A stretch of DNA of 64,000 nucleotides from Epithemia pelagica (GCA_946965045.2 OX337229.1:6271244-6335243); one strand, 5' to 3'; positions 15,276 through 64,000 are shown, counted from the first letter of the stretch. The notes: a model not told the origin generated them from the sequence alone. Numbers and translations are program-made.

Positions 15276-17032
15276 GTTCCATGACATACACAAGGACGAC
15301 GACCAGGATCCATACCCTACTGCCTAACAGTATCCCCAAACGACGACTATAAAAGAAACGCGCGCTATGGAATTGAACGAACTTGTAGAATCCATACATG
15401 GAATCGTATGTTGATAACACAAACTAATGATACCTTGCCTGTGCGATCCGACTAGAGTGACATACAAGAGAGAAGCAAACTCTTCCTGAATGTCTTGGCC
15501 ACGAGGCGCAGTCACTCATCTTTGATTCGCCGTAGGATTGGTCCAAGCTCACCCATCAATTCGTCTTGTTGGCAACGACCAAAAAAAGGGAACGACCAAG
15601 TGCAAGGACCTCGTCGTTCACAACTTCTCGTTCGCGCGCTAGTCGGCGTTCCACCTTCCAACGTTCAAGGGATTTCTGCCGGACGGTCATTCTGTAGTAG
15701 GTCGTCCAGATAAAAGAAAGAGTCCCTCGAGCGTCTAGAAACAGATGGAATCTATCAAGACGAGACACCCCAAACGCTCGAGTTGGACAAAGGAGCCTCC
15801 TTTGTCCAAATCGAGCGATTCGGGTGTCTCGTTTTGGTAGATTCCATCTCCAGCCAGGGATAGAATTCCAAATCACATCACAGTGGCACTCCACTGCGGA
15901 TGATTGCACTCCCGTTTCCGGTCCGTCTGGTCCGCAAAAAGCCGTCACAGGACTTTGTGGTGGGAGTCGTTTGGTATGTGTTGTGGTTGCCGCGAGGAGT
16001 ATATTCTCTCGTCCTTGACCACCACCACCACCACCACCACGACTCTTATGCTGGGCGAAACCAACCGACTGGAGGAGCAAACCGCATTCGCAACACAAGA
16101 ACAAGAAGGAGGAGGTGCTGGTCGTGTCAAACTACTCATTCGGATGGGTTCCCCCAAAACATCACTGCTGGTCTTGCCACACGAGTAATAGAGGGGTTCC
16201 TTCTTGGAGAGACAAGGGAAACTAGTACGGCGAAAGCAGTGTTGTGTGGTCCCACACACAACGAATGCTCTAGCTAGACGCAGTTTCCCGAATTTCGTTT
16301 TACAACTTGTCGTTGTTGTTGTTGTTGTTGAGAACCAGTAACAACACTTGTCCTCCTCCGCGTTCCACCACAAGCTCCCAATGGGTGGACGTACATTGAC
16401 TGGATCATTCAGTAGGAGGAATCGCAGCACTACTTCTGGCGCGGCAAATCCTAATTTGGTTCCAGAGTTGGGGGACACAACGAGAACAGAAGAAGAAGAA
16501 GAGGAAGGATGGGAGTACTTGGTTGTGTGCGTCTTGGTCCATTCGACAACAACAACAACAACAGAATATGTAATATATACCTAGTCTCTTGTGTTGTGCA
16601 TCCAAGACTTGAGCGATTTTGTGTGTCACACAACACGATATCCTTTGCTCATCTCTTGGGGCCTTTTCGTGGTTTGGGCATATACAACATTTGAAATCAC
16701 AATGACTCCACCTATGGATTTGGAGCCGTTGGGACTGTAGAAAGTATACTTTAGTACGATGTCAAGGGTCATTGGTAATAGAGTTCGTTCCCCCCGTTTC
16801 CCCTAACAACTAATAACGCCGTCACGCGCATCAACAACAGAACAATATAGCACCTTTGTAATACCTTCCTCCCCTCCAATTGCTCGTTTGGAAAGGCTCT
16901 TTTGTGTCCGACAACAACAAGAACAAGAAGAACAACAACAAGAACGATCGGGCTTGTGTGTGTGTCCAGATCTCTGTTTGATTCTTGTTGTGATTGCCAA
17001 AGAGCGAAACGAGAAATCTTGCTAGGTATTAG

Positions 17033-20000
17033 TTGCAGTTTTTTTGTGAAATCGAGAAAATGGTGTCATCACCACTACTCCAACCACCACCACAACCTTT
17101 GAAGCGACGACGGCGGCAACCGCCGAGTACCAACCACAACCACAACAACAACCGGGGACGACAAGAGGACCACCCATTGTGGTTTGAGTGCCAGAATCGA
17201 AACGACAACAACCACAAGAACCTCTGTACGAACCACTGGAATGGGTGGTGGTTCTGTTTCTTCCACAATCCAGACGACAAGTGTCCAGGGGGAATAGGAC
17301 CTTGTCGTCGTCTGGAGGGTGACCGAGTTTGGAACAGCAACAAGAAGGGAATTCGAGCCGAAATGACAGGGAACACAACCAAAACAACGATACGAAGAAG
17401 GCGCAGTCGCAACCGCCATGAGACTCCACTCTACGGGCGGTTCGGTTTCGTTTGGCTCGTGGTATGGTTGTCGGTTCTGGGAACCGCTGCAGTTGCAGCA
17501 GTAACCACACACGACGAACCCCAACAAGCACAAGAAGAAGGACATGCGCAAGAACAAACACGACAACGACGACTGGGTCGAGGAATGATGGGTGCCACAC
17601 CTCCACCATCACCACCATTGTCTCCAACGACCCGACGGAGCAGCAGGAGGATTGGTTCTTCTTCTTCTTCTTCACCACCCGAGCTAGTACACTCGCAGCA
17701 AACTCAAACGCAACCACACAAAAAGCAACCACAACAACAACCACAAGGATACATTCGACGTGCCAATCGAGCCCTCCGCGATTCGCAAAAGCCTCGACAT
17801 GACGACAACGACACTAACGAGTCTACTACGACGACAACAACAACAACCACTCGACACACTCGGCGAAACTTGCGTTCGTCGTCGTCCTCCTCCTCTTTGT
17901 CTATTCCTAGGGCCAATAGCAACCACAAGAGTGACAAGAATCACGACCACAAGGTCCCGGAGCAACGGTCCACCAATATTCGTAGAAAAAGGAGGAAGAG
18001 TGACACCACCAATCATTCTCCTGCTGGTACCAACAACCACAACAATACCAGCAACAGTTCTGTCACGACAACCACCACCACAATACAACAACAACAACGA
18101 GCGTTGCGTCGTCCCTCGAACCGTCATGCGAATGCGGAACGAGTCCTTCTTACCACGAATACGACTCATCGCATTTACTTTGACGCGGTGCAGGTGCAAA
18201 TCAATATGGTCTTGCCCATTGCCTGTACCGATGCGGGGGCGGCCACGGTTCGCAATGCGGCTCAGGTCGTGTTGCACACGGTACTTGTGGACACTGCGGC
18301 CAATGACACGAATACGACGACTTGTGAAACACAATGGAATCAATTGCAACTCGTCTTGTTTCCCAATGCCAGTAGTGCCACGACGACTACGACGACGACG
18401 AGGGATTGGACGCCGGTCGATTTGATTGTGGGAGTTCCTGGTACCTGTCTCAACAACCAGAACGCCACCAGCAACATGTGGATTGAGTTGCCCGGAGGCG
18501 TCTTGGAATACGAAACCACTCGAGTAATACCTCTCGTCGTCAATGATTCTCTGGTGGAGGCACAAGCTTCGGCCTTGGTCCAAGACTGTGTGGAATCCAT
18601 TTTGGGTTCGACCGCCATGGTCTCGGAATTGCAATCCAGTTATGCCTTTGTGTCGGGCGTCCAAGTGGTGCCCGACCCCACCCTGGCTCCTTCGGTACAA
18701 CCATCGGCGGTCCCCACGGCATCCGTGGCGCCTTCCACGACAGCTCCCACAATCACACCCACTACAGTTCCCACAATGACAGCTCCCACAACGGCAGTTC
18801 CCAGTCGTAGTCCCACAACTGCACCTATCACAGCCATACCCACGACCAGTAGGCCCACAACGAGCGCACCCGTGTCGTCGCCATCGTTGGTACCCACAAC
18901 ATCACCAGTGGCCAGCACCAACGTGCCGTCGGAACGTCCGTCGGAACAACAAGCCTTGTTACAACCGTCTCCCACGGCCGCTCCTTCCCAGACTGCAGCA
19001 ACCTCAACAACTGTTCCGACGAGTTCCTCCACAGTACCCCCGACGAATAACCGGCCAACAACGACAATGCCCACGCCACAAGGTTCCAGTAGCAGTACCA
19101 CCCAAATGCCAACTTCTGCACCAAGTAGTAGTACTACGACCACAACACCATCGTCGCCGAACGTACCCACGGCTCCACCCACACCAACACCATCCTTGGT
19201 GGTGGTCCCCAACGTACCCACTGCCTTACCCACCCAGCCATCTACCGGTACAGACTTTCCAAGCTTTTCAGCGACAAGAGGGAGTCCCTCTCCCACGGCG
19301 ACCACTGCTGTACCAACCACAACACCCTCCAGTGTTCCGACCGTGATTCAAAATCTCCCTCCTTCGTCGGGAGGGACTGGTACTACTCCTACTACCCCTA
19401 CAGTACCTCCATCGTCGTTGGGGATGACAAAGGCTCCGACCAACCTTCCATCCACGGTACCATCATCAGTTCCCTCACTGCATCCCGAACAGACACCGGT
19501 CGTGGTGGCACAGCAACAAGGCACGAACGACGACGATGAATTTGACGAACAAGTGGCCGTTTCGGATCGAACCAATGAGATTGCGGCTTCCAACAATGAC
19601 AATGACAAAGATGGACGGTGGAGTCCCCGACGGTTAGCTCTTGTGGTGATTTGTGGAAGTATCCTTGTTTACTTGCTGCCCTTTACCGTGTCGCTCGTGT
19701 ATGCGTCGGCTCGCACGCAGTATCAAAAGGCCAAGACGAAAAAAGAGGAGCAAGAAAAACAACAACAACAAATGCTACTTCTACAGGCTGGCAATGTCCG
19801 GTTGGATGATCAGGACGACTCGTCGTCGTCATCGTCTGGTACATCGTTGGTGGTCGAACACTTGTTGCACAGAGATGATCGCCATGGACCGGATGGGGCG
19901 GCGGGGTCTAGTCTGGATACCAGTTACACTTATGAAAGTTTCCCTTCCATGGTCTCCTTGAGCGGCAATTCCAAAAAGAACGACGACGGCAAGACCAGAC

Positions 20001-23000
20001 GAGGACGACGCCAAACGAAGAACAAGAAGCAATTTCCGCGTCAAGTGCAACGTGAACAACAAGCTCAACAAGAAGGAGAGCGACCCGAGCAACGTCCCAT
20101 GGCGGGTACTACCACCACGACAAGTCGTAGTATTCATTTCCATGCATCACCAACCGACGAAAGGGACGACCGGTTCGAACTAGAGGAGGATGGTCAGACG
20201 GTCGAGTCGGTCACAATCCGACACAGCAACCGTGCTCTCGATCACGATCCTATGCATGACTACTTTGATATTACCACCGACGAAGACGACGAAGATGTCA
20301 TCGAAAGCGAGGAAAGTGAAGAGGAACAGTTTTACGATGAACTGATGGAACCCGCCCGACGGCATACCGTGGTACCCATAGGATTGGGAACCCTTCCCAA
20401 CCGCACTCTGGAACGGAACCAGGATTCGCTACAAAGCAGCAGGAGAGCGCTTCAACCGGAGGAGCGAATGCAAAAAGCTCCTACGCACAATCCGCCGTTT
20501 CATCCCAAGCCCGAAGCAACGAAACCGTTGCGGTATGAGGAAAATAAAGATGCGGTGCTATACCAAAAAGCCAACGATTACCTTGGTAGACCTGCGGCTG
20601 GCTCTAAGGATGAGCTCGTCACCTCTAATACGAGTATGAGAGAAAAACAGCAGCTGCCTCTTCAAGAAGCAGGTCGACATGGCTATGCATTGGCAGCTCA
20701 TGACAAGGATCAAATTGCTCTGGTGGAATCCGCAGAGTTTACAAGTCCCAGTGAGCACGACATTTCAGATCGTACAGCAAATCACTCCATCGAGGCTTCC
20801 GAGTCCCCAATCAAGATGCGGTACCCTCAACGTCACAGCATTGGTGCGAGACCACCCGACGACGATGGGAAGATTCTCTTGGTAGACACAGTCATGATGC
20901 AGCCAAGTTATTTCGATGACAAGGACACGGAAAAGATGGAACCATTGACAACACCAGAAAGCGTCCCGCAACCAAGTTCACCATGGTTGGTGCAGTTGCA
21001 ACGACGCCGACATAGCTGTGCTGGTAATCTGGAACAGCCGAAAACATCATCATCATCATCTTCTTCTTCTTCTTCTCCTGGGGACAAAACTACCGAGGTC
21101 ATGAAACAATCACCATTGGTTCCAGACAAACAAGCATCCATAGAAGAAGATGCAGATGGTGCGGAGAGCATTGCCAGTATTCATCCGTTGGCTGCTGCTC
21201 AGGTAATTCCTGGGACGGAAACGAGTTGGGCGCATTTGTCCTTTGGGCAAATGTCGGCACATCCTTCGCCGCGATCCACTTCTTTGTTGAGATCACCCGA
21301 TGACGATACAACGACAAGCAGCGCCAGCGATTGGATGTCACCGGCTTCCCCACATTTGTCGAGACAACAGTCTCCTCGCTCGAAACCGGATCAAGGTGCG
21401 GAGACAACTGAGGTAATTGTCTCTTCTCCGACTCAGCAAGTTCATGTCGAGAAGCGATCCGTTGGCACTCTTACAAACCTTCTCCATCAAATATCAAAGA
21501 GGCAAATGGAAAATTATCCTCACATGGTTACTGCCCAAGAAGGCTCATCAGAAGGCTCTGCAAGTGACAGCAATAGCAGCGATACATCAAATCTCCACAT
21601 CCACGTGGGCTCTGTTTCACTGAACGAGGATGGTGTGGAACATTCCGAGCCGGCATTGCGAGCATCTTTGCAACAAAACAATGAGATGCTGGTCTTACAG
21701 AGCAGTGAATCACAGAAGATGGACGAATCAGGCTCAGATTCCGATGAATCCCAGTCACGGGGATATTTCATGGGTGTAGATCAAACTACATCAAAAGGAC
21801 AGAAATCAGCGGACAAGGTAGACGACGCTGAAAGTATTGTTAGCATTGAGCCACCTACAGTCACGGGTGCCACTCCCGGCACGGAAACCAGCTGGGCCCA
21901 CCTCTCACTAGGGCAGCTAGGTTCTAAATCTCCACCAACCCCAACATCATCTTTGTTGGGCAATAAGACAGCACCTGGCGATGAAAGCCCACAAAGGAGC
22001 GCGAGCAGTTGGATCTCATCGGATTCCCCACAACAACGGTCTGTTCAAGGATCACTTCGTCCGGAGTTGGATGGAAACAGATCCGAGAGGCAAGCTGTCA
22101 CATCGCTACGCCGAGGCACACAAAGACCGACCGGCAACCTGACGAACCTTCTTCGTGAATTATCGCTCAGAGATATGGAGAACAGCGGTAAAAACAGTCA
22201 TCAAATCGCAATGGCAGCCCTTTCGCAAAATGTCAGCAACAGCAGTGACTCGACTGGTCTTCATATCGACCTTGCTTCTGTCTCTACGACGGATCATTCG
22301 GAACATCATGAATCGTTGTTACAAGCCACCTTGCAACAAAGTAACGACATGTTGATCTTACGAAGCGGTATCGACGAATCAAGCTCATTTGGGGAAAACT
22401 CTGTTGGTGAATCTGACTTTCTCCCTACCGATGAAAAAAGTGAGCTCTTACATCCAGGATCGTCAGCGTTAGATGTGGATCCGACTAGTTCCGTTAGATT
22501 CGAGGAGAGTACCCACTTGTCAAGTGGTATCAGCCCCCGTTCAGAACAGACAAGCAATTATGCAACCGATTTATCGAACGCCCCGAATTCCAGAGATACG
22601 ATGGTCGTTCTTGGTCAACCGTCGCCAAGGGAAATATCATCTCAAACTTACGACAGCTGCAGTGTAGATAGTCCCCTGGTTGATATCCATTCCGTCTCCT
22701 CGATGGATCAGTCTTCAGCGATGTCCCAAAGTTCGATGCCTCAAGACACTCACACACGACGTTTGAACTACGAGCCTGTTGGTGATCCTATCATTTCAAG
22801 TAGCGACATGGATGGCACAGTGGCTGATACCACGGATTCCCCCTTGAAAAACGATGATCTACCTCGCAATGATGAAGCCGACATCGCCATTACAGCATCA
22901 CAGTCAAGTGGCCTCCAACCACGCATCGACGATACTTCGGCGGATGAAAAACTACGACTTGAGGAACAGAAAAGTCTTGTTCTTGGCAAAACGTTGAAAG

Positions 23001-51175: not shown

Positions 51176-51687
51176 GAAATGGCAGCAAGAGAGGGTTCCG
51201 TATTATTTGTAACAGAGCAACGCGTGGAAGCGTGGAGACAGAAGGGGTGGGCCTGTCCTGCGTACGAAATGGTGAAGGGCAATCAATCGCACATAGATTA
51301 CCCCCTACCCCTCTCGCTCCAAAATTGCGGGGCGATCCTCGCGGTCGCACCCCGAATACCAAGCCCTAAGTATTTTCCCCTTTTTTGGCATGTTTTAGTG
51401 GGTCTCTACTGTAAGTCATAAACTCAAAAAAGCATAAATCCTACATTTACGTTCGGAAAACACATTTTTAGTATAAGACGATGACTGCTACTGTAAGTCA
51501 TAAAACCTAACCAGTGTCATTCTTTGGACAACCCAACGCACGTTATAGGATATACACAACCATATATATGCATTGGCATGTCGCGCCATTTTTCCCCCAC
51601 GAGACTCCCTCCACCTCGACACGCCTTTCGGCCTCATCGTCATCCTCTTTTCGACTAACCTGTAGTAATATTTGTTGTTGTAATACC

Positions 51688-52461
51688 ATGGATGAAGACG
51701 ATGCATTGATCCTTCTCCTCCTGGAGGAGGAGAAGAAGAAGAAGAAGCTTCGTCTTGAGGAAGCACAGCGTGTTCGTAATCGTTCGGGAGGGATTCGTCG
51801 CGCTGCTCTCCAACATCCAAAATACTCTTCCTTCATGAGACTTTACAATAGTGGCGATGACCCCTCGTTGATAGCTTTGTGTGGCTTTGATCATGAGTCA
51901 TTTGAGAGTCTGCTAAAGCTGTTCACGCCACTGTTTAACAGTTGGAGTCCCTATCCACAGAAAGCGAACAAAAAGTTTCACATGAGACGCGTTCGACAAA
52001 CTGGGAGAACAGGACGGAAACGGCAAATAGACGCAACGATATGTCTAGGATTAGTGCTCGCCTGGACGCGTACTCGTGGTTCAACGATCCCCTTGCAGGT
52101 CATCTTTGGGATGACTGCGAACCCAGTTTCTGTTTGGTTGCGCTTTGGGCGTCGTCTTCTGGTCAAAGTCCTCCAGAACCATCCGGACGCCGAGGTGAGA
52201 ATGCCAACGCGAAGCGAAATAGCGAGCTTCAAGGCGGTTATTAGGGAGAAATACCCTGTGCTCAAGAATGTGTGGGGAGCGATGGACGGACTCAAAGTCC
52301 TCATCGAAGCTAACCCTGATCTTGAAAACATCTTCTATAATGGATGGAAATGCGATCACTATATTTCAAACCTTTTTGTTTTTTCACCAGATGGAAGGAT
52401 CCGGGCGTGTTACATCAACGCGCCTGGATCCTGGCACGATTCTACGTTGGCCCACATCTAA
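51688..52461 (+). mobile_element. PIF/Harbinger (DDE_Tnp_4-like) transposase, C-terminally truncated
   Basis: HTH-like region (CLGLVLAWTRTRGS...LQVIFGMTANPVSVWLRFG), first catalytic motif GAMDG, FYNGWK and APGSWHDS. The ORF stops five residues after HDS, so the rest of the catalytic core is missing. Confidence 0.85.
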
Positions 52462-52550
52462 GGAAGGAACGGTACGCCAGTTTATGGCGGTTTAATTATC
52501 GATAAGAAAGCACCCCTAAGCGCATCCTACTAGAATCATCCGCGCGCAGG

Positions 52551-52870
52551 ACACGCGCACACCTACAAGAACACGCGCACACCTACAAGAACATGCGCAT
52601 GGCCCTTCCTCACGTTATTACTAAAAATGTGCTTTCCAGAACCAGCAAGCGCATGACCCACATTTCACCAACTTCAACACCATGCACAGTCAAGAACCAA
52701 TAGTCATCACATCCCTCCACCTTCATGCACAGTCAAGAACCAACAGTCATCACATACCCTCCTATGTATGCACTCATCCTTGATTGTGTCACATCACCAT
52801 CATGCGCATTACTCCAGCATCAAGTGCAAGCAAGTTGAACACAGTGCATTTAACTAACACCATGCACACA
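52551..52870. repeat. Short tandem repeats (20-bp unit x2.5 at 52551-52600; 43-bp unit x2 at 52681-52763) and recurring ATGC(A/G)CA motifs
   Basis: ACACGCGCACACCTACAAGA repeated; CATGCACAGTCAAGAACCAA(T/C)AGTCATCACAT repeated at 52681 and 52724. Confidence 0.85.
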
Positions 52871-52962
52871 CTCCCACTAACAACCAGCGAATGAATGGAA
52901 CACAATACATGTAGCTATATAGGAGTAGTATATGAAATGAAACCAATTGTCACTCTGATCAA

Positions 52963-54948
52963 TCACTGCCACGACCGTTTTCGTGGCCTTTTAGAAGGCC
53001 TTGTCACAGCATCATCATCTGCATACCCCATTCGAGAGCGATATTGCCCATTGAGAAACATCATGAAACAGATACCGCGGTCGCCTGCTCTGTCTTCACG
53101 AGCGATTTTCTCTTCCATATCCTCAAAATAGTCCATACCATCCTCATTCATACATCCACTTGAGTTCCAACTGCCTGAATATTTGAAGCGAGGATACCTT
53201 GCTGAGGATGTATCAATCATTTGATCAACACCATTTTCATTGTACCACCTTGGATTTAATTCAAATAGTTTCGCCTTGAAAGTGGTCTTGCCCATGTGAG
53301 TCCACACATCCCAGCAATCCACAAGGATGGTCAATATGAACGCCTCGTCACTTGAAGTGAATAACTTCAAGGCCTTTTCGCAATGTTCCTTTCCCTGCTG
53401 CTCAGTGTGGTCACCAAAATTGAAATCAATCACGGTTTTATGCATATTCTCACAATAGACACATGGACCAAACAATTGCAAGAGATATGAATAGGCATAG
53501 TTGTCACACTTCTCTCCTCTCAATAACAGAAATTCTTCCAGGGTAGGCATTGGCCCAAAGTCTTCACAGTCGTTCAAAAGGCATGGATACCTCCGCTGGA
53601 AATTACTGTCACGCCATAGATCAAGACCCACGTGTTCTAGATTCAGCAACAAATTATCTCACATCTCTTTATGAGAAGACGACGTGATGAACCAACACAT
53701 TCACTCTTCGATTGACACTTACTTATGAATGCTTTTCGCATGGAAGCCAGAACATTTGATCGTTTGCTTCGGAACTTGTCAAGCATATAAGGTGAATGTT
53801 CAATCCACCACTCCTCTTGTTGTTTTGCATCCGTAATACCTTTGCCTTTGAAATAGTGCTCAGTAAAATATGTTTTGCCATACTTCCCCCAAAGACCATT
53901 CGGATCTGCCTTAGTATCTTCGGACATGGAGAAATACTTGACATAACGCCATGCCACCTTCCGAACAAATGTATCAAAGAACTTCTCCGATACCACCTCA
54001 GGCTTTTTCTTCGGCTTTTGCTTCTTATTCTTGTCCTTTTCAACAGAACCTTTGTGTGTAGTGGATGTTACAATCGTACTTGTCGGGCAAGATGATTGAT
54101 TATGGTGTACTGTTGTTGTCTGTGTTTCCTGTGCCAACTGATTTTGAATATCGTCTTGTAGAAGAGTTTCCATTGCCTGATCAGGCCCTGTTGTTAGCAA
54201 AGTAGATGACGAAGATGACAACATATCCAAAAGGGAAGAAACGTCGTTAGCAAAGGTATCACCTGATGCATTCAACCCACAAACACCCCCGTCATTAGAG
54301 CCGTCTCACCGACAAATTGTCCTCCTCCATTTTGTGCATCTAACAACTTACTGACAAGTCCTCCAGCAGGAAAATGTCTCTCATTAGGATCAAAATCATC
54401 TCCATCATACTCACTGGGTCCATTGCTCATATTCTGCAATGCTCGTTGCATTTCAGAATATTTACACCGACGTCGTCTTCCTCCATGTTATTAACTTCCG
54501 TGTTTGTTGGTTGCGCAAAACCAGATGATGGTTGTGTTCTCAGCCCACCCTGTTCATTATTGCTATCATCTGCTGAAGTCACATCAGCTCCATCTCTTTC
54601 TGAATTTGTTGCCTGCTCCAAAAGATTACCACTCCCTTCCACAGTTGTGCCTTCTTGTGCTTGTGCTTGATCGTTGTTCATCGAGATCTGTTCCTCTTCT
54701 TCCTCGTCATCAGAACTATCTTCTTGGAGTACTAAACCTCCATTGGTTGCCGCAATAAGAGCATCTTTGTTTGTAATTGTCCCGTCCTTGTTAGGAAGAT
54801 TCTCTTTATTTCTTGTTGCCACTGCTGCCAAGATGCTTCTTCGTTGTCGTTCAACCTCTTTCTGATTACTTCCATAGTTTGCATTTCGGACTGCTAAGGG
54901 TCGACGCCTCGTTGGAGCTGCATTTCTGGTGGTGACTCCTGCCATCAT
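52963..54948 (-). CDS. Spliced hypothetical protein, probable transposon accessory gene (ORF pieces 54948-54427, ~54430-54352, 54262-53723, 53636-52963)
   Basis: Phase-compatible introns: 54351-54263 (GTAAGT...CAG, 89 nt) and 53722-53637 (GTAAGT...TAG, 86 nt), the latter giving RKAFI-K-HVGLDLW. The first junction is unresolved. The C-terminal part has SSDEAFILTILVDCWDVW and SGCMNEDGMDYF. Confidence 0.6.
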
Positions 54949-55509
54949 TTATCTTGGATGCTCCGTCTGATTTATGACAAGGATGTGAACAAGAGCAGGG
55001 TAACAACAAGTCCTCTGATGGACAACCATTCAAATTCAAATGCTGGAATGCTCCATGTTTGAATCATAAACTCCGTGTTTGAACGATTGTCCTTTGGAGA
55101 ACGTATGAAGATGAGCATAGGTGGTTTCAAGTACATCATACTTGTCAGATGGAACATTGGTGCATGGGTTTGAATGATTGTCATTTCCTTTCTAATGTCG
55201 ACAGTGTCGGTATCCTCGGCATTGACACAGTGTTTGAATTCCAATCGCTGCTATCACCGTTGGTATCTAACCCGGCAGGCTGGATTGGATTAAGTAAATA
55301 CACACGACCGTTTGAAAATATTATGATCCGTTCATGTACATAAGCGATTTTCAGTCGCTTTTATGCACCAACGTCGGCCGATCCACCCAATGCGGAGAAA
55401 TTCTGATATATGCCACAAGATTGACCACCGATGTCTCAATTTGCAGAAATCGATTACAGAGCATTTTTCATTCCAAACCAAAATCTAAAACCACCAGCAT
55501 CGTACCATT

Positions 55510-58500
55510 ATGGGCCAGCGTCGTAAAGTAAAAAAGAAGTCACGAAAGAGATGCTCAAATAGAAGCCAACAAGAGGAGTCCTTCATATCCTTTCAAGTGT
55601 GTCGTTTCTGTCAATCACGTTTCGATGCAAGAGGAATCAGCCGTCACGAAACAGTTTGTGAATTGAAAATGAACACACAAAGGAAATGGCCAAATGTTGG
55701 CGATGACAACAATGATTGTGCCAGTAATATGAATGCTGATCCAATGAATATTGATATCATGGACGATGAAACCACTATTCCGCATGCTGACCCACCAAAA
55801 GCATACTATGTACCTGGTGATACAGATAATATTATTCTGCGCAACAGCAAGGAGTGCCCGGTTGATTTTCCTGCGTTCCTTGATAGAGATGGGAAGCAAT
55901 TGAAACTTCATAAACACGATGCAGCCTTGGTCTCACTTATGATGTTACTTCGGAAAGCTGGTTGCCCCAAATATTTGTACAATTCGATCCTGGCATGGTC
56001 GAGTGACACATACTCAAGATGCGGTCCTGGGTTCTTCCTGGACAACCATTCAAAGAGGAAAACGTTCATCGAAAAGTTTTCTACCAAAGGTTTCAATTAT
56101 CTCAAGGCAAAATTTTTCCCTGTACCAATGGAATTCACCCAAAAACAGGGTGTGGTTGTACCAGAGAGTGAGAAATCAATAACAACAGCAGTATTTGATT
56201 TGATCAGTCAACTACAGCGTGTATTACAAGATCCCGATGCAACCAAGAAAGAAAATACGATCCTCGATGATGACGATCCGTATCGTCCATATGTTCCAAA
56301 CAAGCACATCCAAAATATACAAGACGGAGAAGTATTTCGGAAAACAGTGGAAAAATATAGAGATGATCCAGATGCCTTCGTGGTTGGTCTTGTCTGTTAT
56401 ATGGACAAAACACCTGCAACAGGGGATGGAAGATATACATCGGAGCCTGTTGTAATGGTGCCATCTTTTCTAACGGAAACACAAATGAGGAAAGCAAGGC
56501 GACAGATCATCCTTGGGACTATTACAGACATGGAAAGAAAATCATCGGCGGCAAAACATATCCTCGATAAAGGGACTCCTTGCCAAAATTATCATGCTCA
56601 ATTGACTAAGATCCTCGAAGGTCTTGTCAGTATCCAAAAACAGGAAGGTTTATGGATGAAACTACGCCTCCATGGGATTATCAAAGTTGTCCGTTTGATA
56701 TTGCCAATGATTGTTGTCAAAGGAGACGGGAAGTCTCAGGATAACCTTGCAGGTCGGTATGCCTCGCATCATCCAAGTGTTGGAAGACTATCATGGTGTT
56801 GCAACATTAAACCAAGGGATAGCAAATACCCATGGCATGAATGTTCTTATATCAACGCTGCAAGTACATACAAAATGTGCTTGAATGCATTGGGTCTTAA
56901 TGAAAATCGAGAAAAACTGACTGAACAGGATGTTGATTACCAAGAGAGAGACAATGATACATTTTTGACTTTGACTGTTCCTACCTGTTTCAGCACATCG
57001 CAAGTAAGTCAAGAAAATAGCAGAGATGGAGGGGTCAATACCCTTGTGTCAGCTGCAAAAACCCAATTGCATGACATGGGACAATATGCAGTCGATCTTT
57101 GTTTTTCCAAGGTTTACCTGGGTGAAGGAACCAATTCTGAACATGGGATTTTCTCGGCCAGTAGCTGTGATGTTCTTCATACATTGAAATCTGGGATAAT
57201 GAGATACATCATGATTGACTTTTTCACGTTGATGACAAAAACTGAACGGGCCATGTTTGATTATGTCTACAATTCAATCTTTCGGGCAAGTAGACAGACT
57301 GTATTCTCGTATTCATCGAAACTTGGATATCCCGGAACATCATTCTCGACCGGGATCAGTAACCTGTCAAAAGTAACTGCCAATGAGTGGGTAGGGATCA
57401 TGTTTGCTTCAGCAGCTCTATGTGCCACTGCCAGAGGTCGCCTTATATTTGCGAAGAATATGGCAAAGAAATGGAACAAGGTGGTTGCGGAATGGAAAAA
57501 ACGACAAGCAAAGCAAATATCCAAAACCACCAACAAGACATGTCAAGCGGACGTGGATCAAGTGCAAGAGACAAGTGAACCTATTGCTGACAATGAGGAT
57601 GATACTCCACCAGATGAAGAGTACAAACGTACACGTCTTGATGATGATGATAGTGTTGACATTGATATCACTGCTGAAACTGTTTTTGATGATGACCCAG
57701 TTGCTTACAGGTCTATCTGGGATGTTGATGAGCGGGAACCATACAAAGACTTCCTGCATCTATTCGAGACTCTTTTGTGTTTCAACAGCTGGATTCGTAT
57801 GGATACATTCTGGGAAACAGACCCAGACTCACAAGAAGGACAAACAACAGCATCCAAGTCTCTCGAATCAGTGCGGATTTTGATGGATGGCATCAGGAGA
57901 TATGCACCCAGGCTCGATAAAAAAGGCAAATTGATGTCCAACGGGTGGATGATACCAAAATTCCACAATCTCATACACATTATACAACAGATTCAGAATT
58001 TTGGACCAGCACAACTGCTTGATGTGGAGTCAGAGGAAAGTAATCATAAGGAAATTGTGAAATTGAATGCAAAAACGGTACAGAAACGTGGAAAAGGAAT
58101 TTTTGAGTCGCAACTTGCAGAAAATATCTGGTGGATGCAAAGCTTGGAAATGCTGCAGGAAGCAACAGGTCTTGAAGAAGATCATGTCACCTTTCTCCAC
58201 GAAGGGAAGTTGCCTTATGAAATAAGGAGAAAAAAGGGATCCCAAAACCAACTCCCTACCACATCAACCTCAAATAGCCGTGGAACGGTCATAGTAGTAT
58301 CCATGACCAGAGAAAAATATTTGATTCCAATACCTCACACGAACGTACATACTTCTGGTGGTAATCAAGACCAGTCATCAAATGAAATAGACAAGGATCT
58401 TCCGTCTCCATTGGGTATGTCAATTCAAGTTCCAGGCACGACCAGAAAAGAACAAGACGGATCAAACCGAAACCAGACGAGTAGTGTACACAGGCGATTG

Positions 58501-59367
58501 ACAGCAGCACCACACAAGGAGGATGTGGTATCAGTGAATATCGAATTCCATTCCAAAACAAATCATGACATGACATTGCCACAGTTTTGTAATCACTTCT
58601 TTCGATTACATTACAAACGCTTTTTTCATCATATAGACGGGATGAGTGATGATCCAACAAATGAGACTTCAACCACACTGGAATTGTTCGGGAGCACAGA
58701 ACTTAAGTTCGAAGACCCCAGGATAGGAAATATACGGGCTCATCCGAATTATCAAAGCGAGGGGCCATGGAGAGATTGGGTGATGGCTAAAGTTCCAAAG
58801 AAAAAAAGGAAACCTCTTGACGAGGTATACAACCAACCTCTCGGAGAATTTGATACCATCCTATGTCAAACGATATGCTTCATTCAAATACCCATTACTC
58901 GAACACACCACATACAAATACAACCATCACCGGTATGTCAACCTTCAACTTCACCCGAGATGACCCATGTCCTTCTCCGAACGACATATGTACGGAGTGC
59001 AGCTGATATCGAGAAATCATCCGTTCTCTTTCAAAAATGGCGGAAGCGTTTTGACCTACATCGAATAGCTGAAATTGTCATGGTTCCACTCCGGAATATT
59101 GTTGAGGTTGTTGGTGTAGTGGATGAGAACCCAGAAATGATTCAAGACCGTGATTCTATCCCAACATATTTCCATTCTTCACTTGAAAAAGATTTGCTCC
59201 AAGAAGACAGTCGTAATTTGAGAAACTTTAGTGACAATGTCTGGGCCGTGCGCAACATCAAAGAATGGGCTTCCGAATTCAATGAAAGTGCCCGTGACAA
59301 TCTCGAGAAACGCTGTAATGAAATGAAAGAAAGATTGAAACAATCCGTCAGCAATTCGACCTCATGA
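55510..59367 (+). CDS. Plavaka-type (CACTA clan) DDE transposase, 1285 aa, N-terminal C2HC zinc finger
   Basis: CRFCQSRFDARGISRHETVC zinc finger. Catalytic-core-like motifs GLVCYMDKT...G...EPV (D1), VVKGDGKSQ (D2), CDVLHTLKSGI, and PKFHNLIH...NFGPAQLLDVESEESNHK (E) follow the Plavaka pattern sDkT / D..EQ / DiLHq..kG / H...I..fG...T...E..H. Single intact ORF. Confidence 0.8.
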   Translation: MGQRRKVKKKSRKRCSNRSQQEESFISFQVCRFCQSRFDARGISRHETVCELKMNTQRKWPNVGDDNNDCASNMNADPMNIDIMDDETTIPHADPPKAYYVPGDTDNIILRNSKECPVDFPAFLDRDGKQLKLHKHDAALVSLMMLLRKAGCPKYLYNSILAWSSDTYSRCGPGFFLDNHSKRKTFIEKFSTKGFNYLKAKFFPVPMEFTQKQGVVVPESEKSITTAVFDLISQLQRVLQDPDATKKENTILDDDDPYRPYVPNKHIQNIQDGEVFRKTVEKYRDDPDAFVVGLVCYMDKTPATGDGRYTSEPVVMVPSFLTETQMRKARRQIILGTITDMERKSSAAKHILDKGTPCQNYHAQLTKILEGLVSIQKQEGLWMKLRLHGIIKVVRLILPMIVVKGDGKSQDNLAGRYASHHPSVGRLSWCCNIKPRDSKYPWHECSYINAASTYKMCLNALGLNENREKLTEQDVDYQERDNDTFLTLTVPTCFSTSQVSQENSRDGGVNTLVSAAKTQLHDMGQYAVDLCFSKVYLGEGTNSEHGIFSASSCDVLHTLKSGIMRYIMIDFFTLMTKTERAMFDYVYNSIFRASRQTVFSYSSKLGYPGTSFSTGISNLSKVTANEWVGIMFASAALCATARGRLIFAKNMAKKWNKVVAEWKKRQAKQISKTTNKTCQADVDQVQETSEPIADNEDDTPPDEEYKRTRLDDDDSVDIDITAETVFDDDPVAYRSIWDVDEREPYKDFLHLFETLLCFNSWIRMDTFWETDPDSQEGQTTASKSLESVRILMDGIRRYAPRLDKKGKLMSNGWMIPKFHNLIHIIQQIQNFGPAQLLDVESEESNHKEIVKLNAKTVQKRGKGIFESQLAENIWWMQSLEMLQEATGLEEDHVTFLHEGKLPYEIRRKKGSQNQLPTTSTSNSRGTVIVVSMTREKYLIPIPHTNVHTSGGNQDQSSNEIDKDLPSPLGMSIQVPGTTRKEQDGSNRNQTSSVHRRLTAAPHKEDVVSVNIEFHSKTNHDMTLPQFCNHFFRLHYKRFFHHIDGMSDDPTNETSTTLELFGSTELKFEDPRIGNIRAHPNYQSEGPWRDWVMAKVPKKKRKPLDEVYNQPLGEFDTILCQTICFIQIPITRTHHIQIQPSPVCQPSTSPEMTHVLLRTTYVRSAADIEKSSVLFQKWRKRFDLHRIAEIVMVPLRNIVEVVGVVDENPEMIQDRDSIPTYFHSSLEKDLLQEDSRNLRNFSDNVWAVRNIKEWASEFNESARDNLEKRCNEMKERLKQSVSNSTS

Positions 59368-59565
59368 TCATAATTTGCCTCTATGGGGGGTTGTCACATA
59401 CCAGCACTTCCCCTCCTAATCTCCCCCCCCCAACCGTACGCGAGCCGACCAATTCAACTCAGAGTGTCACACACAAATTGGATGAAATAGTAGATACTTT
59501 CCATCGTTTTCCAAAAGTCATCCTCAGTCTTCAGTCAGTTAGGCTATTCTACTCCTCTTCAAACA

Positions 59566-60693
59566 ATGATCAACCCATACAAATTGAGGAAGAAAACAGT
59601 TCCACCCTTGGTGGTCAAACCAAACTTTCCAGCCACAAAGATACCTCCATCTAATGAAGAAATGATGATCAACCCATACGAGCTAGAGGAAATAGGGACC
59701 CCAATGGTCAAAACGCACTCTCCAACCCCGAAAACTTGCGACGGTGAACATGACAAGAAGCCACCGCATGCGTCCAAATCAATAATCAAATGTCATCCAC
59801 TTCCTTCTTCTAAGCTTGACACCAAGGAAGAAGAAGAGAAGAAACTTCCACCAATCAAGCGCCCATCGTATCAGTTGATCCCAAACCCATATAAGAAGAA
59901 GCTCAAGGTTGCTGATCCATCTACTATTCCAATCTTGCTATTACATGACTCTCCTCTGATGTGTAAACCAAGAGCAAACCGAGATAAGCTGCATCTCGAA
60001 GTTATTCGGTTCACTGAGCTTGTCAATAAAATCTATGGATCCAATGATGTTCCCCCAGAGCCAGTCTGTCCTTGGTGTTTTGTAACCGACAACCTTTCAA
60101 CAGATTGTAGACTTACAGGAAAATGTTGGCATCGCTTCGGTAAATCTCTCTCATGTGCCGATTGTTGTTATGGTTGTGGAGTGCCCATGAACGGATGTGA
60201 TTCAGGTGGGAATGAACGTTGTTGCACCGAAGCCCTGTATATCCATGATTCGATAAATATCACACGCGAAGAATCAGACATAAACAAGGTTCCATTGGTG
60301 TGTAAGTCTTGCTTAAGGCCATGCAATTCTTATTCAGAATGCGTCTTCTCGCATGGTTGTTGGAACTCTTGCAACAAGTACTTCGTCTGGCGATTCTGTC
60401 ATATTGCTGGACGGGCGTTGGTGTACGCACAATTGAAGCCCAATTGCAAAGGACCAGGCACGATTCCCAAACATGCACAGGATATTATCAAAAACGCCAC
60501 AGAGTTGATGTACAACGAACTGCGAGATCCGATGGAGTCTTCTCAGTACACATCTCCATTTTGTCATGTTCTTGACCAAGACTCCTGGTCTAAATGGCTT
60601 GTCTCCATGTCTTTTGGTCGATTCTACAATTACATGCCGTTCTTCCGTCATTGTTACACAGCCTTGATGTCTTCATCGAAACCATTGTATTAA
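59566..60693 (+). CDS. Cys-rich hypothetical protein A (375 aa), disordered N-terminus with three NPY motifs
   Basis: CPWC, CADCCYGC, CKSC, CWNSC clusters; NKYFVWRFC and SWSKWLVSMSFGRFYNYMPFF. Confidence 0.7.
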   Translation: MINPYKLRKKTVPPLVVKPNFPATKIPPSNEEMMINPYELEEIGTPMVKTHSPTPKTCDGEHDKKPPHASKSIIKCHPLPSSKLDTKEEEEKKLPPIKRPSYQLIPNPYKKKLKVADPSTIPILLLHDSPLMCKPRANRDKLHLEVIRFTELVNKIYGSNDVPPEPVCPWCFVTDNLSTDCRLTGKCWHRFGKSLSCADCCYGCGVPMNGCDSGGNERCCTEALYIHDSINITREESDINKVPLVCKSCLRPCNSYSECVFSHGCWNSCNKYFVWRFCHIAGRALVYAQLKPNCKGPGTIPKHAQDIIKNATELMYNELRDPMESSQYTSPFCHVLDQDSWSKWLVSMSFGRFYNYMPFFRHCYTALMSSSKPLY

Positions 60694-60754
60694 ACAAAGA
60701 CTCGACTTCTTCGAAAGGCAAACTGGGAACAGATAACAAGATTAAGATTATATG

Positions 60755-61807
60755 TCAATGATCATTACCATCCATATTTCCACGTTCCAACTCCGCCGTC
60801 TCAGCCATTCTTTCGAGACAATTACGGAAGCACCTGACAAAGAGTGGCATGTAGTTGCGAAATCCAGCCGTAGAATGAGGCAACGAAAGCAACCATACTG
60901 CCCATGTTTTATCAGATGCTCGGGCATAATCGTATGGGGCACAGTCGTTATCATCAAAATAGAAACGGGATCGCAATTCCTCAAGCCAAACGCTGCGGAC
61001 AATAGTAAACATTGGCCAGGTGATTTGACGGGGAAAGTTCACACCATCGTAAAATGATGTTATTTGAAAAGTACGCGCCACAATATGGCGTATGAGCATA
61101 CAGAACTGCCACACGAAGTGCTTGTTCTCAGATTCCACACAGACACTGCATGAATCCAAATCTGGTTGTGGAATCCCAAAAGGTATTGAGCGTTCGGGAA
61201 TTCGGAAACATTCCCTACACACCTGACAATGAAATGTTGGATGCCTGTGGCGGTGACATAAGTTACAACGCATCAAAAAATTCTGCTGCCAGATAACCGA
61301 ATAATCGAGATATGCCGCACGTGTTACCACTGTAGTATTTCCATGATTGCACTGGTGATGTGGTGTGGGACGACCAAGGATAACACAGTATGGACAGAGT
61401 TTCTCACCTCTAAGCATTTCGTCCACCAACCGTTTGAATTCAGTCTGGATTTCATGACCGACACGCATCTCTTCTCTGAGTTGTTCTATGACTTGTGGTA
61501 CATCTTCTTCTTCATTATCGTAATCAAAAAAGATCCTCCCAGCGTCCCTGTAACAAGGCCGATCGTTCACTTCCAAGTTCCTGTCGTTGATCGCCCGCAT
61601 TTCTCGTCGTCGTCTACGTTCCCGAACATAAAAATCTTCTTCCTCCGATTCATCTCCCGATTCATCCTCCGGTTGGTCCTCCGGATTGTCAGCCATTCTG
61701 TTTGCAGTCTCCTTCTTTTCGTTTTGATGTGAATGCAAATACCTGTACTTGTTGCTTCTTCTTTGGATTTTTATGAAACCTCTGCTGTCATATGAACGAG
61801 AGTTCAA
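60755..61807 (-). CDS. Cys-rich hypothetical protein B (350 aa), convergent paralog of protein A
   Basis: CPYC, CNLC, CQVCREC, CSVC clusters; NKHFVWQFC and TWAVWLLSLPHSTAGFRNYMPLF match protein A motifs. Confidence 0.7.
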   Translation of the reverse strand: MNSRSYDSRGFIKIQRRSNKYRYLHSHQNEKKETANRMADNPEDQPEDESGDESEEEDFYVRERRRRREMRAINDRNLEVNDRPCYRDAGRIFFDYDNEEEDVPQVIEQLREEMRVGHEIQTEFKRLVDEMLRGEKLCPYCVILGRPTPHHQCNHGNTTVVTRAAYLDYSVIWQQNFLMRCNLCHRHRHPTFHCQVCRECFRIPERSIPFGIPQPDLDSCSVCVESENKHFVWQFCMLIRHIVARTFQITSFYDGVNFPRQITWPMFTIVRSVWLEELRSRFYFDDNDCAPYDYARASDKTWAVWLLSLPHSTAGFRNYMPLFVRCFRNCLERMAETAELERGNMDGNDH

Positions 61808-61949
61808 CTGGAAATAGATCCACGGAAAACCGATCGGTCGCGTTTGTGTACAGAAATCGTCACACTATACTATTCACTGTGAGTATTACCACATACTGTG
61901 AGGATAAGTGTAATCATTCCCAACATGGTCGCGTTTCACTCGCTGGGCT

Positions 61950-62227
61950 GACCTATCGGTGTGGCTTTGCAAAATTCCATGGACATGGAACAATGACATG
62001 CTTCTAGAACTCGAATGGCTCCAAATTTTCGTAGAGACCATTTGGGTATCATTTGCATGGACAGTAAAGGCTCTGAACTTGTCTATCATCAACCAAAAGA
62101 CTTGCAACAGACCCTACCGGTGTGGTGTTGCCGTCGTCCCAAAATTCTATGGACATAGAGCAAAGACATGCTTCTAGAACTCGAATGGCTCCAAATTTTC
62201 TAGAGACCCTTGGGGTATCATAGGCAT
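61950..62227. repeat. Imperfect direct repeat, 170-bp period, with a 36-bp identical core
   Basis: GACATGCTTCTAGAACTCGAATGGCTCCAAATTTTC at 61995-62030 and 62165-62200, with similar flanks. Confidence 0.9.
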
Positions 62228-62288
62228 TGATTGATGGTAGGTAGTGGTTTTGCTGATAGGTGGACATGGTCTTGTATATTAGAAATCT

Positions 62289-63302
62289 CTATTCGTCACT
62301 AGATTTCTGGCCCGACGCCAAGCCTCCAATTTCATGAGAATTGTCATCCTCGTTTTGTGTTACGGTAGCACTCAAAGATCTTGCATTTGTGCTAAAAAAC
62401 CAACCAATCGTATGATTTCCCACATTCTTGTCTTTCGGTGGTATGGAGTGTGTATGGACAGATGTTCCATGTCTGATGATTCTCCCGTCCCATGCGATCG
62501 CAATGCCATGGAATAACCGGATACAAAGCCCATGATAAGTCTTGTCCTTATGCTTTATAAGGACATTGGGAAGGACGAAATACCAATCGTTGGTGCTGCC
62601 CGGGTTGGTTTCTGTCCAGATTGTAAACGACACAGATGCATCATGAATATCATAGTGGCTTGCATTCATCAAATCGCAACTCAAAATGATGGATGATGAC
62701 ACACCCCTTTCGTTTCCTCCCAATTCGTTTGGGACATCCAAACCGAAGTTTGTTTCCAGGTGTCTGAAAGCCGATAACACACCAGGGAATTTCCTCTCAC
62801 AGAATCGCCGAACACCTCCACAGATTTTTGGCAATATATTCATCATGTTTGGAGATATTTTGAAAAGTTTGTCAGAAAAGAATGTACTTCTGCCACCCGT
62901 TTTTGTGCACACACCAACAGATGTCATGGTCCCCATATCACCATGGTTACACCTTGCATTGGCTGATCTCTCTAGTGTACCGCTCTGCGCGAAGTGACAT
63001 GACCTCTTGTGTAACAATGAAAGTAGGTTTTTGTCATTTTGCTGAAGTGTTGTCACTTTGACATGGCTGATGGTTTCGTTTTTACCCGCGTACCCACGTG
63101 TCCGAACAATGAATGTTGTATCTTCTCCGGTTTCCCTTACATCAAACAGGAGCGGACGGACCGAAGTATCAGGCGGAGGGGACAGGTTTCTATACAATGC
63201 TCCATGGACGTACTTTCGGCATCCAGTCTTGTTAGCACTGGCTTTATTCAGCAGTGTTTCACGATACCACACTCTAAGAGAATGTTGGTCATTTGGTGTC
63301 AT
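62289..63302 (-). CDS. TET/JBP-family Fe(II) dioxygenase, 337 aa from the first ATG, probably 5'-truncated by the telomere
   Basis: NASHYDIHD (H216-x-D218, D221), hydrophobic strand WYFVLPN, IAWDGRIIRHGT (distal H278) and upstream R...DMGTMTSVG give the double-stranded beta-helix and iron triad typical of TET/JBP enzymes. Confidence 0.8.
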   Translation of the reverse strand: MTPNDQHSLRVWYRETLLNKASANKTGCRKYVHGALYRNLSPPPDTSVRPLLFDVRETGEDTTFIVRTRGYAGKNETISHVKVTTLQQNDKNLLSLLHKRSCHFAQSGTLERSANARCNHGDMGTMTSVGVCTKTGGRSTFFSDKLFKISPNMMNILPKICGGVRRFCERKFPGVLSAFRHLETNFGLDVPNELGGNERGVSSSIILSCDLMNASHYDIHDASVSFTIWTETNPGSTNDWYFVLPNVLIKHKDKTYHGLCIRLFHGIAIAWDGRIIRHGTSVHTHSIPPKDKNVGNHTIGWFFSTNARSLSATVTQNEDDNSHEIGGLASGQKSSDE

Positions 63303-63405
63303 TTTTGGTCTCGACTTTTCACTTGTATAATGATCAGGGGCCCAAAGTGGAGAACCACTTTCGACATCAGACGCTTGGTAGCATTCATGGACAACTCTCT
63401 TTGCA

Positions 63406-64000
63406 TTAGGGTTAGGGTTAGGGTTAGGGTTAGGGTTAGGGTTAGGGTTAGGGTTAGGGTTAGGGTTAGGGTTAGGGTTAGGGTTAGGGTTAGGGTTAGG
63501 GTTAGGGTTAGGGTTAGGGTTAGGGTTAGGGTTAGGGTTAGGGTTAGGGTTAGGGTTAGGGTTAGGGTTAGGGTTAGGGTTAGGGTTAGGGTTAGGGTTA
63601 GGGTTAGGGTTAGGGTTAGGGTTAGGGTTAGGGTTAGGGTTAGGGTTAGGGTTAGGGTTAGGGTTAGGGTTAGGGTTAGGGTTAGGGTTAGGGTTAGGGT
63701 TAGGGTTAGGGTTAGGGTTAGGGTTAGGGTTAGGGTTAGGGTTAGGGTTAGGGTTAGGGTTAGGGTTAGGGTTAGGGTTAGGGTTAGGGTTAGGGTTAGG
63801 GTTAGGGTTAGGGTTAGGGTTAGGGTTAGGGTTAGGGTTAGGGTTAGGGTTAGGGTTAGGGTTAGGGTTAGGGTTAGGGTTAGGGTTAGGGTTAGGGTTA
63901 GGGTTAGGGTTAGGGTTAGGGTTAGGGTTAGGGTTAGGGTTAGGGTTAGGGTTAGGGTTAGGGTTAGGGTTAGGGTTAGGGTTAGGGTTAGGGTTAGGGT
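63406..64000 (+). repeat. Telomere, (TTAGGG)n, ~99 perfect copies, G-rich strand running toward the chromosome end
   Basis: Uninterrupted TTAGGG to the end of the window; abrupt junction ...CTCTTTGCA|TTAGGG. Confidence 0.99.

Follow-up and report, generated by a model that had tools for sequence, protein, structure and literature searches.

The stretch of DNA analysed here, called the window below, comprises 64,000 nucleotides of the Epithemia pelagica genome (GCA_946965045.2, OX337229.1:6271244-6335243). Alignment to intact loci shows that its positions 52455-63405 form the left-hand 11 kb of a member of a cut-and-paste transposon family, whose intact copies are 18.4-18.6 kb long. The explanation that best accounts for the evidence as a whole, to which we assign a probability of about 80%, is that this segment is the left part of an autonomous element, most likely of the Plavaka lineage (CACTA/EnSpm group), which carries a gene for a TET-type dioxygenase. 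The core of what had been proposed from the sequence alone, a multi-gene Plavaka-type transposon with a TET/JBP-type dioxygenase, stands on the basis of terminal inverted repeats, 2-bp duplications, near-identical copies and structure matches. The limits proposed at the same time, 52462-63405, had to be corrected: the true start is 52455, and position 63405 is a junction with a telomere and not an end of the element.

The G+C content falls from 0.48 to 0.42-0.44 from about 52.5 to 63.4 kb of the window. At least four other loci share 98-99% identity with the segment, which is far beyond chance. The left border lies at 52455, where five copies with unrelated left flanks all begin to align at the same base (CATCTAAGGAAGGAACGG). 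The family possesses a terminal inverted repeat of 15 nt (CATCTAAGGARGGAA), with one mismatch between the two ends; the right ends of the other copies read CATCTAAGGAGGGAA in reverse complement and mirror the left terminus. Direct target duplications of 2 bp (TG, GA, GA, TG and TG) were found at all five complete copies. A duplication of 3 bp was also considered and was rejected, as it does not fit the flanks of these copies. The window contains the following terminal features:

52453-52454, no strand: left copy of the target-site duplication (CA), the flank ending in GGCCCA and being followed by CATCTAAGG; its right-hand counterpart disappeared together with the right end of the element.
52455-52469, plus strand: left terminal inverted repeat, CATCTAAGGAAGGAA, at the alignment border common to five copies.

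The complete copies measure 18,443-18,648 bp, apart from one which is 12,762 bp long owing to an internal deletion, and those of 18.4-18.6 kb are mutually 98.2-99.5% identical; one intact copy is located on ctg1341l at 378244-396705. The transposase belongs to a cluster (90% identity) of 53 members, the cluster of the 1702-amino-acid (aa) dioxygenase protein, which bears RING fingers and is called RING-TET below, has 47, and those of the other genes have 21-36, all of them in ENA ERZ21939226; the element-protein clusters with 21-47 members fall on the same set of contigs. From its sequence features the family can be regarded as an autonomous cut-and-paste DNA transposon that was apparently active recently. 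Intact copies extend another 7.5 kb to the right of the point that matches 63405, and a complete element holds six genes, in the order accessory (minus strand), transposase (plus), Cys-rich A (plus), Cys-rich B (minus), 1702-aa RING-TET (minus) and a 388-aa gene (minus), so that the five-gene layout originally read from the window was incomplete.

The homology to the element ends at 63405, and about 600 nt of perfect (TTAGGG)n follow from 63406 to the end of the window. At the junction CTCTTTGCA is followed by TTAGGGTTAGGG, whereas in three intact copies the same CTCTTTGCA is followed by CTTTGTGTCC. What is lost to the right of this point comprises codons 1-1330 of the dioxygenase gene, the 388-aa gene, the array of about 200-bp units and the right terminal inverted repeat. 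Contact with a telomere was absent in all other fetched copies. The simplest reading is that a chromosome break within the RING-TET gene was subsequently healed by the addition of a new telomere, and the window copy offers a small and clean example of such an event within a transposon. Since the right end and most of the RING-TET gene are missing, this copy can neither move on its own nor make the enzyme, and judging from its sequence it is a dead, telomere-truncated one. The self-contained mobile unit of the sequence-only reading therefore cannot be upheld for this stretch, which is truncated by the telomere and contains a frameshifted accessory gene and a fragmentary dioxygenase gene. The broken gene and the repeat that caps it are located as follows:

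62289-63405, minus strand: remnant of the RING-RING-TET/JBP-like gene, about the last 371 codons, collinear with positions 16792-17908 of the intact locus L003, where the whole gene occupies 16792-21900.
63406-64000, plus strand: telomere repeat (TTAGGG)n, immediately adjoining the broken RING-TET gene.

The transposase gene of the window copy is intact, as had been read from the sequence:

55510-59367, plus strand: transposase, 1285 aa, 98% identical to the homolog P0010, member of a cluster of 53, with a ratio of nonsynonymous to synonymous polymorphism (pN/pS) of 0.15.

The N-terminus of the protein bears a zinc finger of the C2HC type. D299, D406, E843 and the motif C554-x2-H557 are invariant in a four-sequence alignment (A5), and the D, D, E motifs are also kept in a distant relative from another sample (L011, see below); this conservation is as expected for the CACTA-type group. 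By their pattern alone, the three acidic residues are candidates for the catalytic triad of DDE transposases of the CMC group, in which a long insertion and a C/DxxH motif stand between the second D and the E. In the atlas feature search the nearest clusters were those with PF18759 (Plavaka), with scores of 0.97-0.98, and the ten best family-bearing matches all agreed. The homolog P0012, which matches the window transposase at E 6e-198, gave a hit to PF18759 when its N-terminal 330 residues were scanned alone, at E 0.0031 and 17.2 bits, under the cut-off of 26.3 bits. Moreover, the 2-bp duplications of the family agree with those of the PlavakaB sub-lineage, and its termini CATCT..AGATG share four of five terminal bases with the PlavakaB ones. 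Thus the transposase probably belongs to the Plavaka lineage. In the profile search for further transposase relatives A5 retrieved the query's own cluster only, and in the scan of metagenome contigs none of its 203 pattern matches could be confirmed. The direct Pfam scans covered all open reading frames (ORFs) of the window, transposase fragments and relatives, and the only usable matches were those to RING families and the sub-threshold one of P0012.

An HxD...H dioxygenase had been noticed in the window as a 337-aa ORF (62289-63302, minus strand). The motif is indeed there, but since the telomere replaces everything to the right of 63405, the ORF is only the tail of the 1702-aa gene, namely the portion of the remnant that follows an internal Met. 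In its own numbering it retains a double-stranded beta-helix core with H216-x-D218 and H278; the promoter, the two RING fingers and the first half of the TET domain are missing from the remnant. Homologs of the 337-aa ORF are longer, with 444-581 aa or more, and possess a conserved N-terminal extension. The intact protein consists of two RING fingers, a low-complexity stretch of about 540 residues and the C-terminal TET domain at residues 1143-1702. Of the RING fingers, the C3HC4 one at residues 505-551 was recognised by Pfam (PF13920, E 2e-7; PF00097, E 3.8e-6), and the second is a RING-H2-like motif at about 380-430.

The dioxygenase domain was assigned mainly by structure comparison. For the intact domain AlphaFold gave a model with a mean predicted local distance difference test value (pLDDT) of 85.8 and a predicted template modelling score (pTM) of 0.88. 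When it was compared with the PDB by Foldseek, the first 22 rows were all TET2, CMD1, CcTet and NgTET1 (E 1e-10 to 1e-5), with FTO and others appearing later. The VIA-align comparison gave a Z score of 19.5 for TET2 (301 residues, positions 90-555 of the model), 15.9 for NgTET1, 15.7 for CMD1 and 15.6 for CcTet. Among the Swiss-Prot models JBP2, TET1, CMD1, TET3, NgTet and JBP1 ranked on top, and the top AFDB clusters were named "Tet-like 2OG-Fe(II) oxygenase" and "JBP1/TET oxygenase". Thus the modelled domain has a fold of the TET/JBP type, which scores well above AlkB and FTO. An exhaustive profile search of public data retrieved 1131 representative clusters at E <=1e-3, 284 of them at E <=1e-30. 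The alignment of 89 relatives (A4), whose first row is the C-terminal 560 residues of the intact copy, has H439, D441 and H501 invariant in all 89 sequences. PF20515 ('Tet-like') was matched by 5 of the 89 relatives (best E 3.3e-4) and was the sole family matched by more than one member; neither the window protein nor that of L003 matched it, and PF12851 was matched by none.

Two observations concern the relatives themselves. P0154, a relative with the TET-like domain, is an N-terminal fusion with a DEAD-box helicase and Helicase_C, an arrangement that recalls JBP2 with the order reversed. The TET-like members of Fragilaria crotonensis are named hypothetical proteins in GenBank, and the clade carries no Pfam annotation. 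The closest relatives that bear a species name are those of Fragilaria crotonensis, and one atlas cluster has the label Bacillariophyta; on these two grounds the host would be a diatom-like alga.

Selection was estimated from the differences among four intact copies. The transposase and the TET domain had pN/pS values of 0.15 and 0.13, the 388-aa gene one of 0.19, and the accessory gene 0.22-0.72 depending on the exon; in the low-complexity stretch and the RING region of the 1702-aa protein the values were 0.46 and 0.65. All element genes thus appear, from these comparisons, to be under purifying selection, and the low values imply that most differences between copies accumulated along lineages in which selection acted on these genes.

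Transposase and TET genes are also linked outside this family, and the case in which TET homologs would have been unlinked to the transposase did not arise, as the two were linked in four independent contexts. The same genome holds a second family (L010, ctg1299l), which encodes a 1376-aa transposase that is 52% identical and a TET part that is 42% identical to those described here, and its gene order is kept (accessory, transposase, Cys-rich A, Cys-rich B, RING-TET). This locus has about 4 kb of extra sequence between the Cys-rich genes, and its ends were not found. In another sample (ERZ28668934) the locus L011 encodes a 1739-aa TET-domain protein (27% identity, E 2e-41), whose gene is convergent with, and 65 nt from, that of a 1263-aa transposase homolog (22% identity, E 2e-28). 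Finally, in Fragilaria crotonensis (L012, GCA_022925895.1, JAKSYS010000205.1) a TET-like gene adjoins transposase fragments (tblastn E 2e-24).

Transposon silencing in diatoms proceeds by CG methylation, and to our knowledge no enzyme that removes or oxidises 5-methylcytosine (5mC) has been described in them. Traces of such methylation could be looked for in the element itself. Among the five aligned copies 299 singleton substitutions were counted, of which 149 were C/G-to-T/A changes, and 73 of these 149 fell on CpG sites. By an estimate from these counts and the observed/expected CpG ratio, about 5.4% of the CpG positions have changed compared with about 1.1% of the other C/G positions, an excess of about five-fold per site. 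CpG is also depleted in the element, with an observed/expected ratio of 0.73-0.77 compared with 0.92-0.97 in its flanks. This pattern of CpG decay is the one that would be expected if the host methylated the element at CG, and it is indirect evidence of such methylation.

On this ground the oxidation of 5mC, with relief of silencing, appears to be the best-supported mechanism. The host would methylate the element at CG sites, the TET-like enzyme of the element would oxidise 5mC on or around the element DNA, and the transposase and accessory genes would thereby stay expressed, while the RING fingers might add a ubiquitin-ligase or recruiting activity. We infer that the element-encoded enzyme may in this manner escape silencing by CG methylation, and we consider the odds of this to be about even; the substrate, the anti-silencing role and the function of the RING fingers should all be read as putative. 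The family supplies a concrete candidate for a 5mC-oxidising enzyme in diatoms, and the fusion with RING fingers hints at an as yet undescribed connection between DNA oxidation and ubiquitin signalling.

The remaining genes present in the window accompany the transposase and the dioxygenase gene:

52963-54948, minus strand: accessory gene with three predicted exons (54948-54352, 54262-53723 and 53636-52963), the three ORFs being kept in all copies.
59566-60693, plus strand: Cys-rich protein A, 375 aa, cluster of 28 members, pN/pS 0.17.
60755-61807, minus strand: Cys-rich protein B, 350 aa, cluster of 21 members, pN/pS 0.23.

The exon ORFs of the accessory gene lie in three different frames, and two perfect GTAAGT donors with AG acceptors delimit introns of 89 and 86 nt; the predicted splicing in intact copies yields one reading frame of 605 codons. 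The spliced accessory gene that had been read from the window agrees with this prediction, but in the window copy exon 1 is frameshifted by a 10-bp deletion near 54456, which is private to this copy. No Pfam match was found for the accessory gene. The two Cys-rich proteins proved to be paralogs, as had been supposed, weak but significant ones (BLASTP E 1e-8 over the C-terminal 108 aa). Cys-rich A is conserved in the second family at 40% identity; it had no relative in Pfam, and its best atlas score was 0.68.

Several points weigh against the interpretation given above. PF18759 was not matched by the window transposase, by its relative in the second family or by that in L011, and no Pfam transposase or Tet_JBP model matches the window proteins directly, so that the search with PF18759 and PF12851 which had been suggested as a check gave no direct match. 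The AlphaFold model of the transposase core, built from five sequences, had a pLDDT of 32 and was unusable. Since this model failed, the assignment to Plavaka rests on the language-model search, one sub-threshold Pfam match of a homolog and the features of the ends. For the dioxygenase, profile searches of the PDB sequences with A1 and A4 found nothing. In TET2 and JBP1 the 2-oxoglutarate-binding Arg follows the distal His, and no Arg or Lys is conserved 8-25 residues after the distal H501 in the 89 sequences; R340 (98%), R497 (82%) and R500 (94%) are conserved elsewhere in the domain. Since the usual 2-oxoglutarate Arg is not conserved, the co-substrate may differ. CMD1, a structural neighbour, uses vitamin C (PMC12730594). 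The pN/pS values come from four copies only, whose pairs are not independent. As for splicing, the sequencing runs that hold the sequence (X1-X3) look like DNA assemblies, with contigs of up to about 0.5 Mb, and show no intron joints; these contigs are a collapsed repeat consensus in which the telomere junction is not visible. The telomere junction, too, is known from this single assembly.

The strongest alternative to 5mC oxidation concerns the product of the enzyme. The dioxygenase may make another base, either by hydroxylation of T in the manner of JBP or by forming an adduct like that of CMD1 with a co-substrate other than 2-oxoglutarate, and would then mark or shield the DNA or alter transcription. 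The presence of JBP2 and JBP1 among the best AFDB matches and the Z score of 15.7 for CMD1 are in line with this, as is the lack of a conserved Arg/Lys after the distal His in a domain that has conserved residues of its own, R340 and R497-x2-R500-H501; in addition, divergent TETs of transposons may not act like canonical ones (Kojima, PMC12730594). However, the structure that matches the model best is TET2 (Z 19.5), with an alignment of 300 residues which includes the N-terminal part, the signature of CpG decay points to 5mC as the relevant host mark, and no recognisable glycosyltransferase or other follow-up enzyme was found in the element by the Pfam scans. We therefore regard the production of another base as possible but doubtful. 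Somewhat more speculative still is the idea that RING-TET represents an enzyme with a non-canonical co-substrate, belonging to a large diatom clade that was spread by Plavaka-type transposons and either demethylating DNA or writing a new base. If this were true, the element would be both an anti-silencing device and a source of DNA-oxidation chemistry for the host.

RING-TET could also be a captured host gene, carried as a passenger and having no role in the life cycle of the element, since DNA transposons do capture fragments of host genes. This is improbable in view of the constraint on the TET domain, which equals that on the transposase (pN/pS 0.13 versus 0.15). The linkage is moreover maintained at 42% and 27% identity and across three further lineages, and all 47 cluster members lie in element copies of the same assembly.

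That the dioxygenase belongs to another family of 2-oxoglutarate oxygenases (AlkB/FTO or prolyl hydroxylase), acting on RNA, protein or alkylated bases, is still less probable. Its identity to the solved TETs is just 8-13%, PF12851 gave no match, and structures of AlkB and FTO match as well at Z 11-12, the best non-TET ones being ALKBH3 (11.8) and FTO (11.4). Nevertheless, the 16 best VIA-align rows and the 22 best Foldseek rows are all TET-family proteins, with a gap of nearly 3 Z units beneath the lowest TET row, and the TET matches span residues 31-555, whereas those of AlkB and FTO cover just 270-558. The names of the AFDB clusters are TET-like, and PF20515 is the only recurrent Pfam match. 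An AlkB/FTO identity was therefore rejected on structural ranking and coverage, and the prolyl hydroxylase family likewise gives way to the TET/JBP-type fold of the structure matches.

Another reading would make the block a set of subtelomeric genes multiplied by segmental duplication or recombination, with a domesticated 1285-aa protein. It would suit the window copy, which abuts a telomere, and L001, which lies near a contig end, but it was rejected because the remaining copies sit well inside contigs of 0.2-2.9 Mb, none of the other fetched ones being at a telomere, and because all five complete copies have exact borders, inverted repeats and 2-bp duplications within unrelated flanks.

With an autonomous, TET-carrying transposon as the preferred explanation, its repeats and the DNA beside it can be described:

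52540-52760, no strand: subterminal direct repeats, consisting of GTGCGCGTGTTCTTGTAGGT-type units of about 20 nt and a 43-nt pair; repeat family D4 at 52672-52757.
61965-62230, no strand: intergenic direct repeat with a spacing of 170 nt, between the Cys-rich B and dioxygenase genes; repeat families D2, D6 and D7.
Element positions of about 16.9-17.8 kb (L005 8616-9527): tandem array of about 200-bp units, absent from the window; an extra unit in L007 and L008.
51514-52461, plus strand: interrupted transposase ORF of the Harbinger/PIF type (DDE_Tnp_4; Pfam PF13359, E 1.1e-5), belonging to the flank and not to the element.

The short direct repeats just inside the left end had already been noticed in the sequence-only reading, and L001 holds additional units of them compared with the other copies. 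The tandem array of the intact copies is variable, its units are 85-94% alike, and it separates the 388-aa gene from the right end. L001 (ctg1263l) also carries, at roughly 16543-16549, an internal deletion of 5.7 kb, by which the RING-TET gene is almost entirely removed and the 388-aa gene in part. Both termini and the TG duplication are retained in this deletion derivative, which could therefore move if served in trans. At the locus L009/L002 (ctg1273l) the right terminus was not found; a retrotransposon (RVT_1, RNase H, rve) occupies the expected place (L009 3686-7060), probably as a nested insertion.

In the Harbinger-type ORF of the flank, the match to DDE_Tnp_4 comprises profile positions 1-58 of 158 only and stands at the C-terminal end of the ORF, whose stop lies 7 nt inside the element terminus. 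The element would have inserted into this transposase gene first, and the chromosome break with telomere capping would have come later. The other half of the Harbinger gene would have lain beyond the element and been lost with the chromosome end.

The novelty of the element is smaller than had been thought, since both fungal Plavaka elements with TET genes (PMC12730594) and red-algal Plavaka elements with a 2-oxoglutarate oxygenase (bioRxiv 10.1101/2025.02.11.637652) have been published. TET-carrying transposons of many superfamilies, PlavakaB included, have been described only in fungi (Kojima 2025, PMC12730594). PlavakaB is the sub-lineage that comprises all fungal TET-carrying Plavaka elements, and it shows 2-3-bp duplications and termini of the form 5'-CATCA..TGATG-3' (PMC12730594). 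The PlavakaB elements of Agaricales (Agaricus bisporus, Gymnopus confluens; PMC12730594) resemble the present family, which is probably likewise a DDE element related to CACTA/EnSpm, in their short target duplications and CATC...GATG ends, and in encoding a very divergent TET/JBP-type enzyme of their own, which is recognised mainly by structure. The same role, escape from methylation silencing, has been put forward for them as a hypothesis (PMC12730594). They differ in host, which is a stramenopile here, and in the termini, which are CATCT and not CATCA in the present family; furthermore, the dioxygenase described here forms the C-terminal domain of a protein of 1702 aa that also bears two RING fingers, and it is accompanied by four further conserved genes (accessory, Cys-rich A, Cys-rich B and 388 aa).

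The giant Plavaka elements of the red algae Bostrychia moritziana and Chondrus crispus are 17.4-19.1 kb long and carry the accessory genes PAG1-3 (bioRxiv 10.1101/2025.02.11.637652). They are similar in size, in having several genes, in encoding a protein with a 2-oxoglutarate oxygenase and in the tandem repeats by an accessory gene (PAG3). Compared by description, however, PAG3 combines a ParB-like DNA-binding domain with a 2-oxoglutarate oxygenase whose best matches are of the phytanoyl-CoA type and not TET-like. PAG2 (N6-adenine methylase and SET) has no counterpart in the present family, and RING fingers and Cys-rich paralogs were not reported in the algal elements.

The Kyakuja-Dileera-Zisupton (KDZ) transposons of basidiomycetes were linked to TET/JBP genes by Iyer et al. 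2014, as related in PMC12730594. They are likewise DNA transposons that carry and expand TET/JBP genes, although their transposase superfamily is unrelated and their target duplications are of 7-8 bp (PMC12730594). CcTet, a relative, is a proven oxidase of 5mC and 6mA (PMC12730594). This enzyme is a structural match to the dioxygenase described here, at Z 15.6. As regards function, the closest analogy is provided by a plant system. VANDAL transposons of Arabidopsis, which the Bostrychia preprint also cites, encode VANC, an anti-silencing factor of their own against host DNA methylation; VANC is not an oxygenase, and its mechanism and protein family are unrelated to those considered here.

No account of such elements in diatoms was found in the literature searched. 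While TET-carrying Plavaka elements are known from fungi, the host group, the RING fusion and the four extra conserved genes are new. Relatives are found both in Fragilaria crotonensis and among numerous environmental sequences, and together they indicate a large TET-like clade whose members standard annotation calls "hypothetical protein". If the interpretation is right, the family would extend the TET-type counter-silencing strategy of transposons to a third eukaryotic supergroup, with the red algae as a looser parallel.

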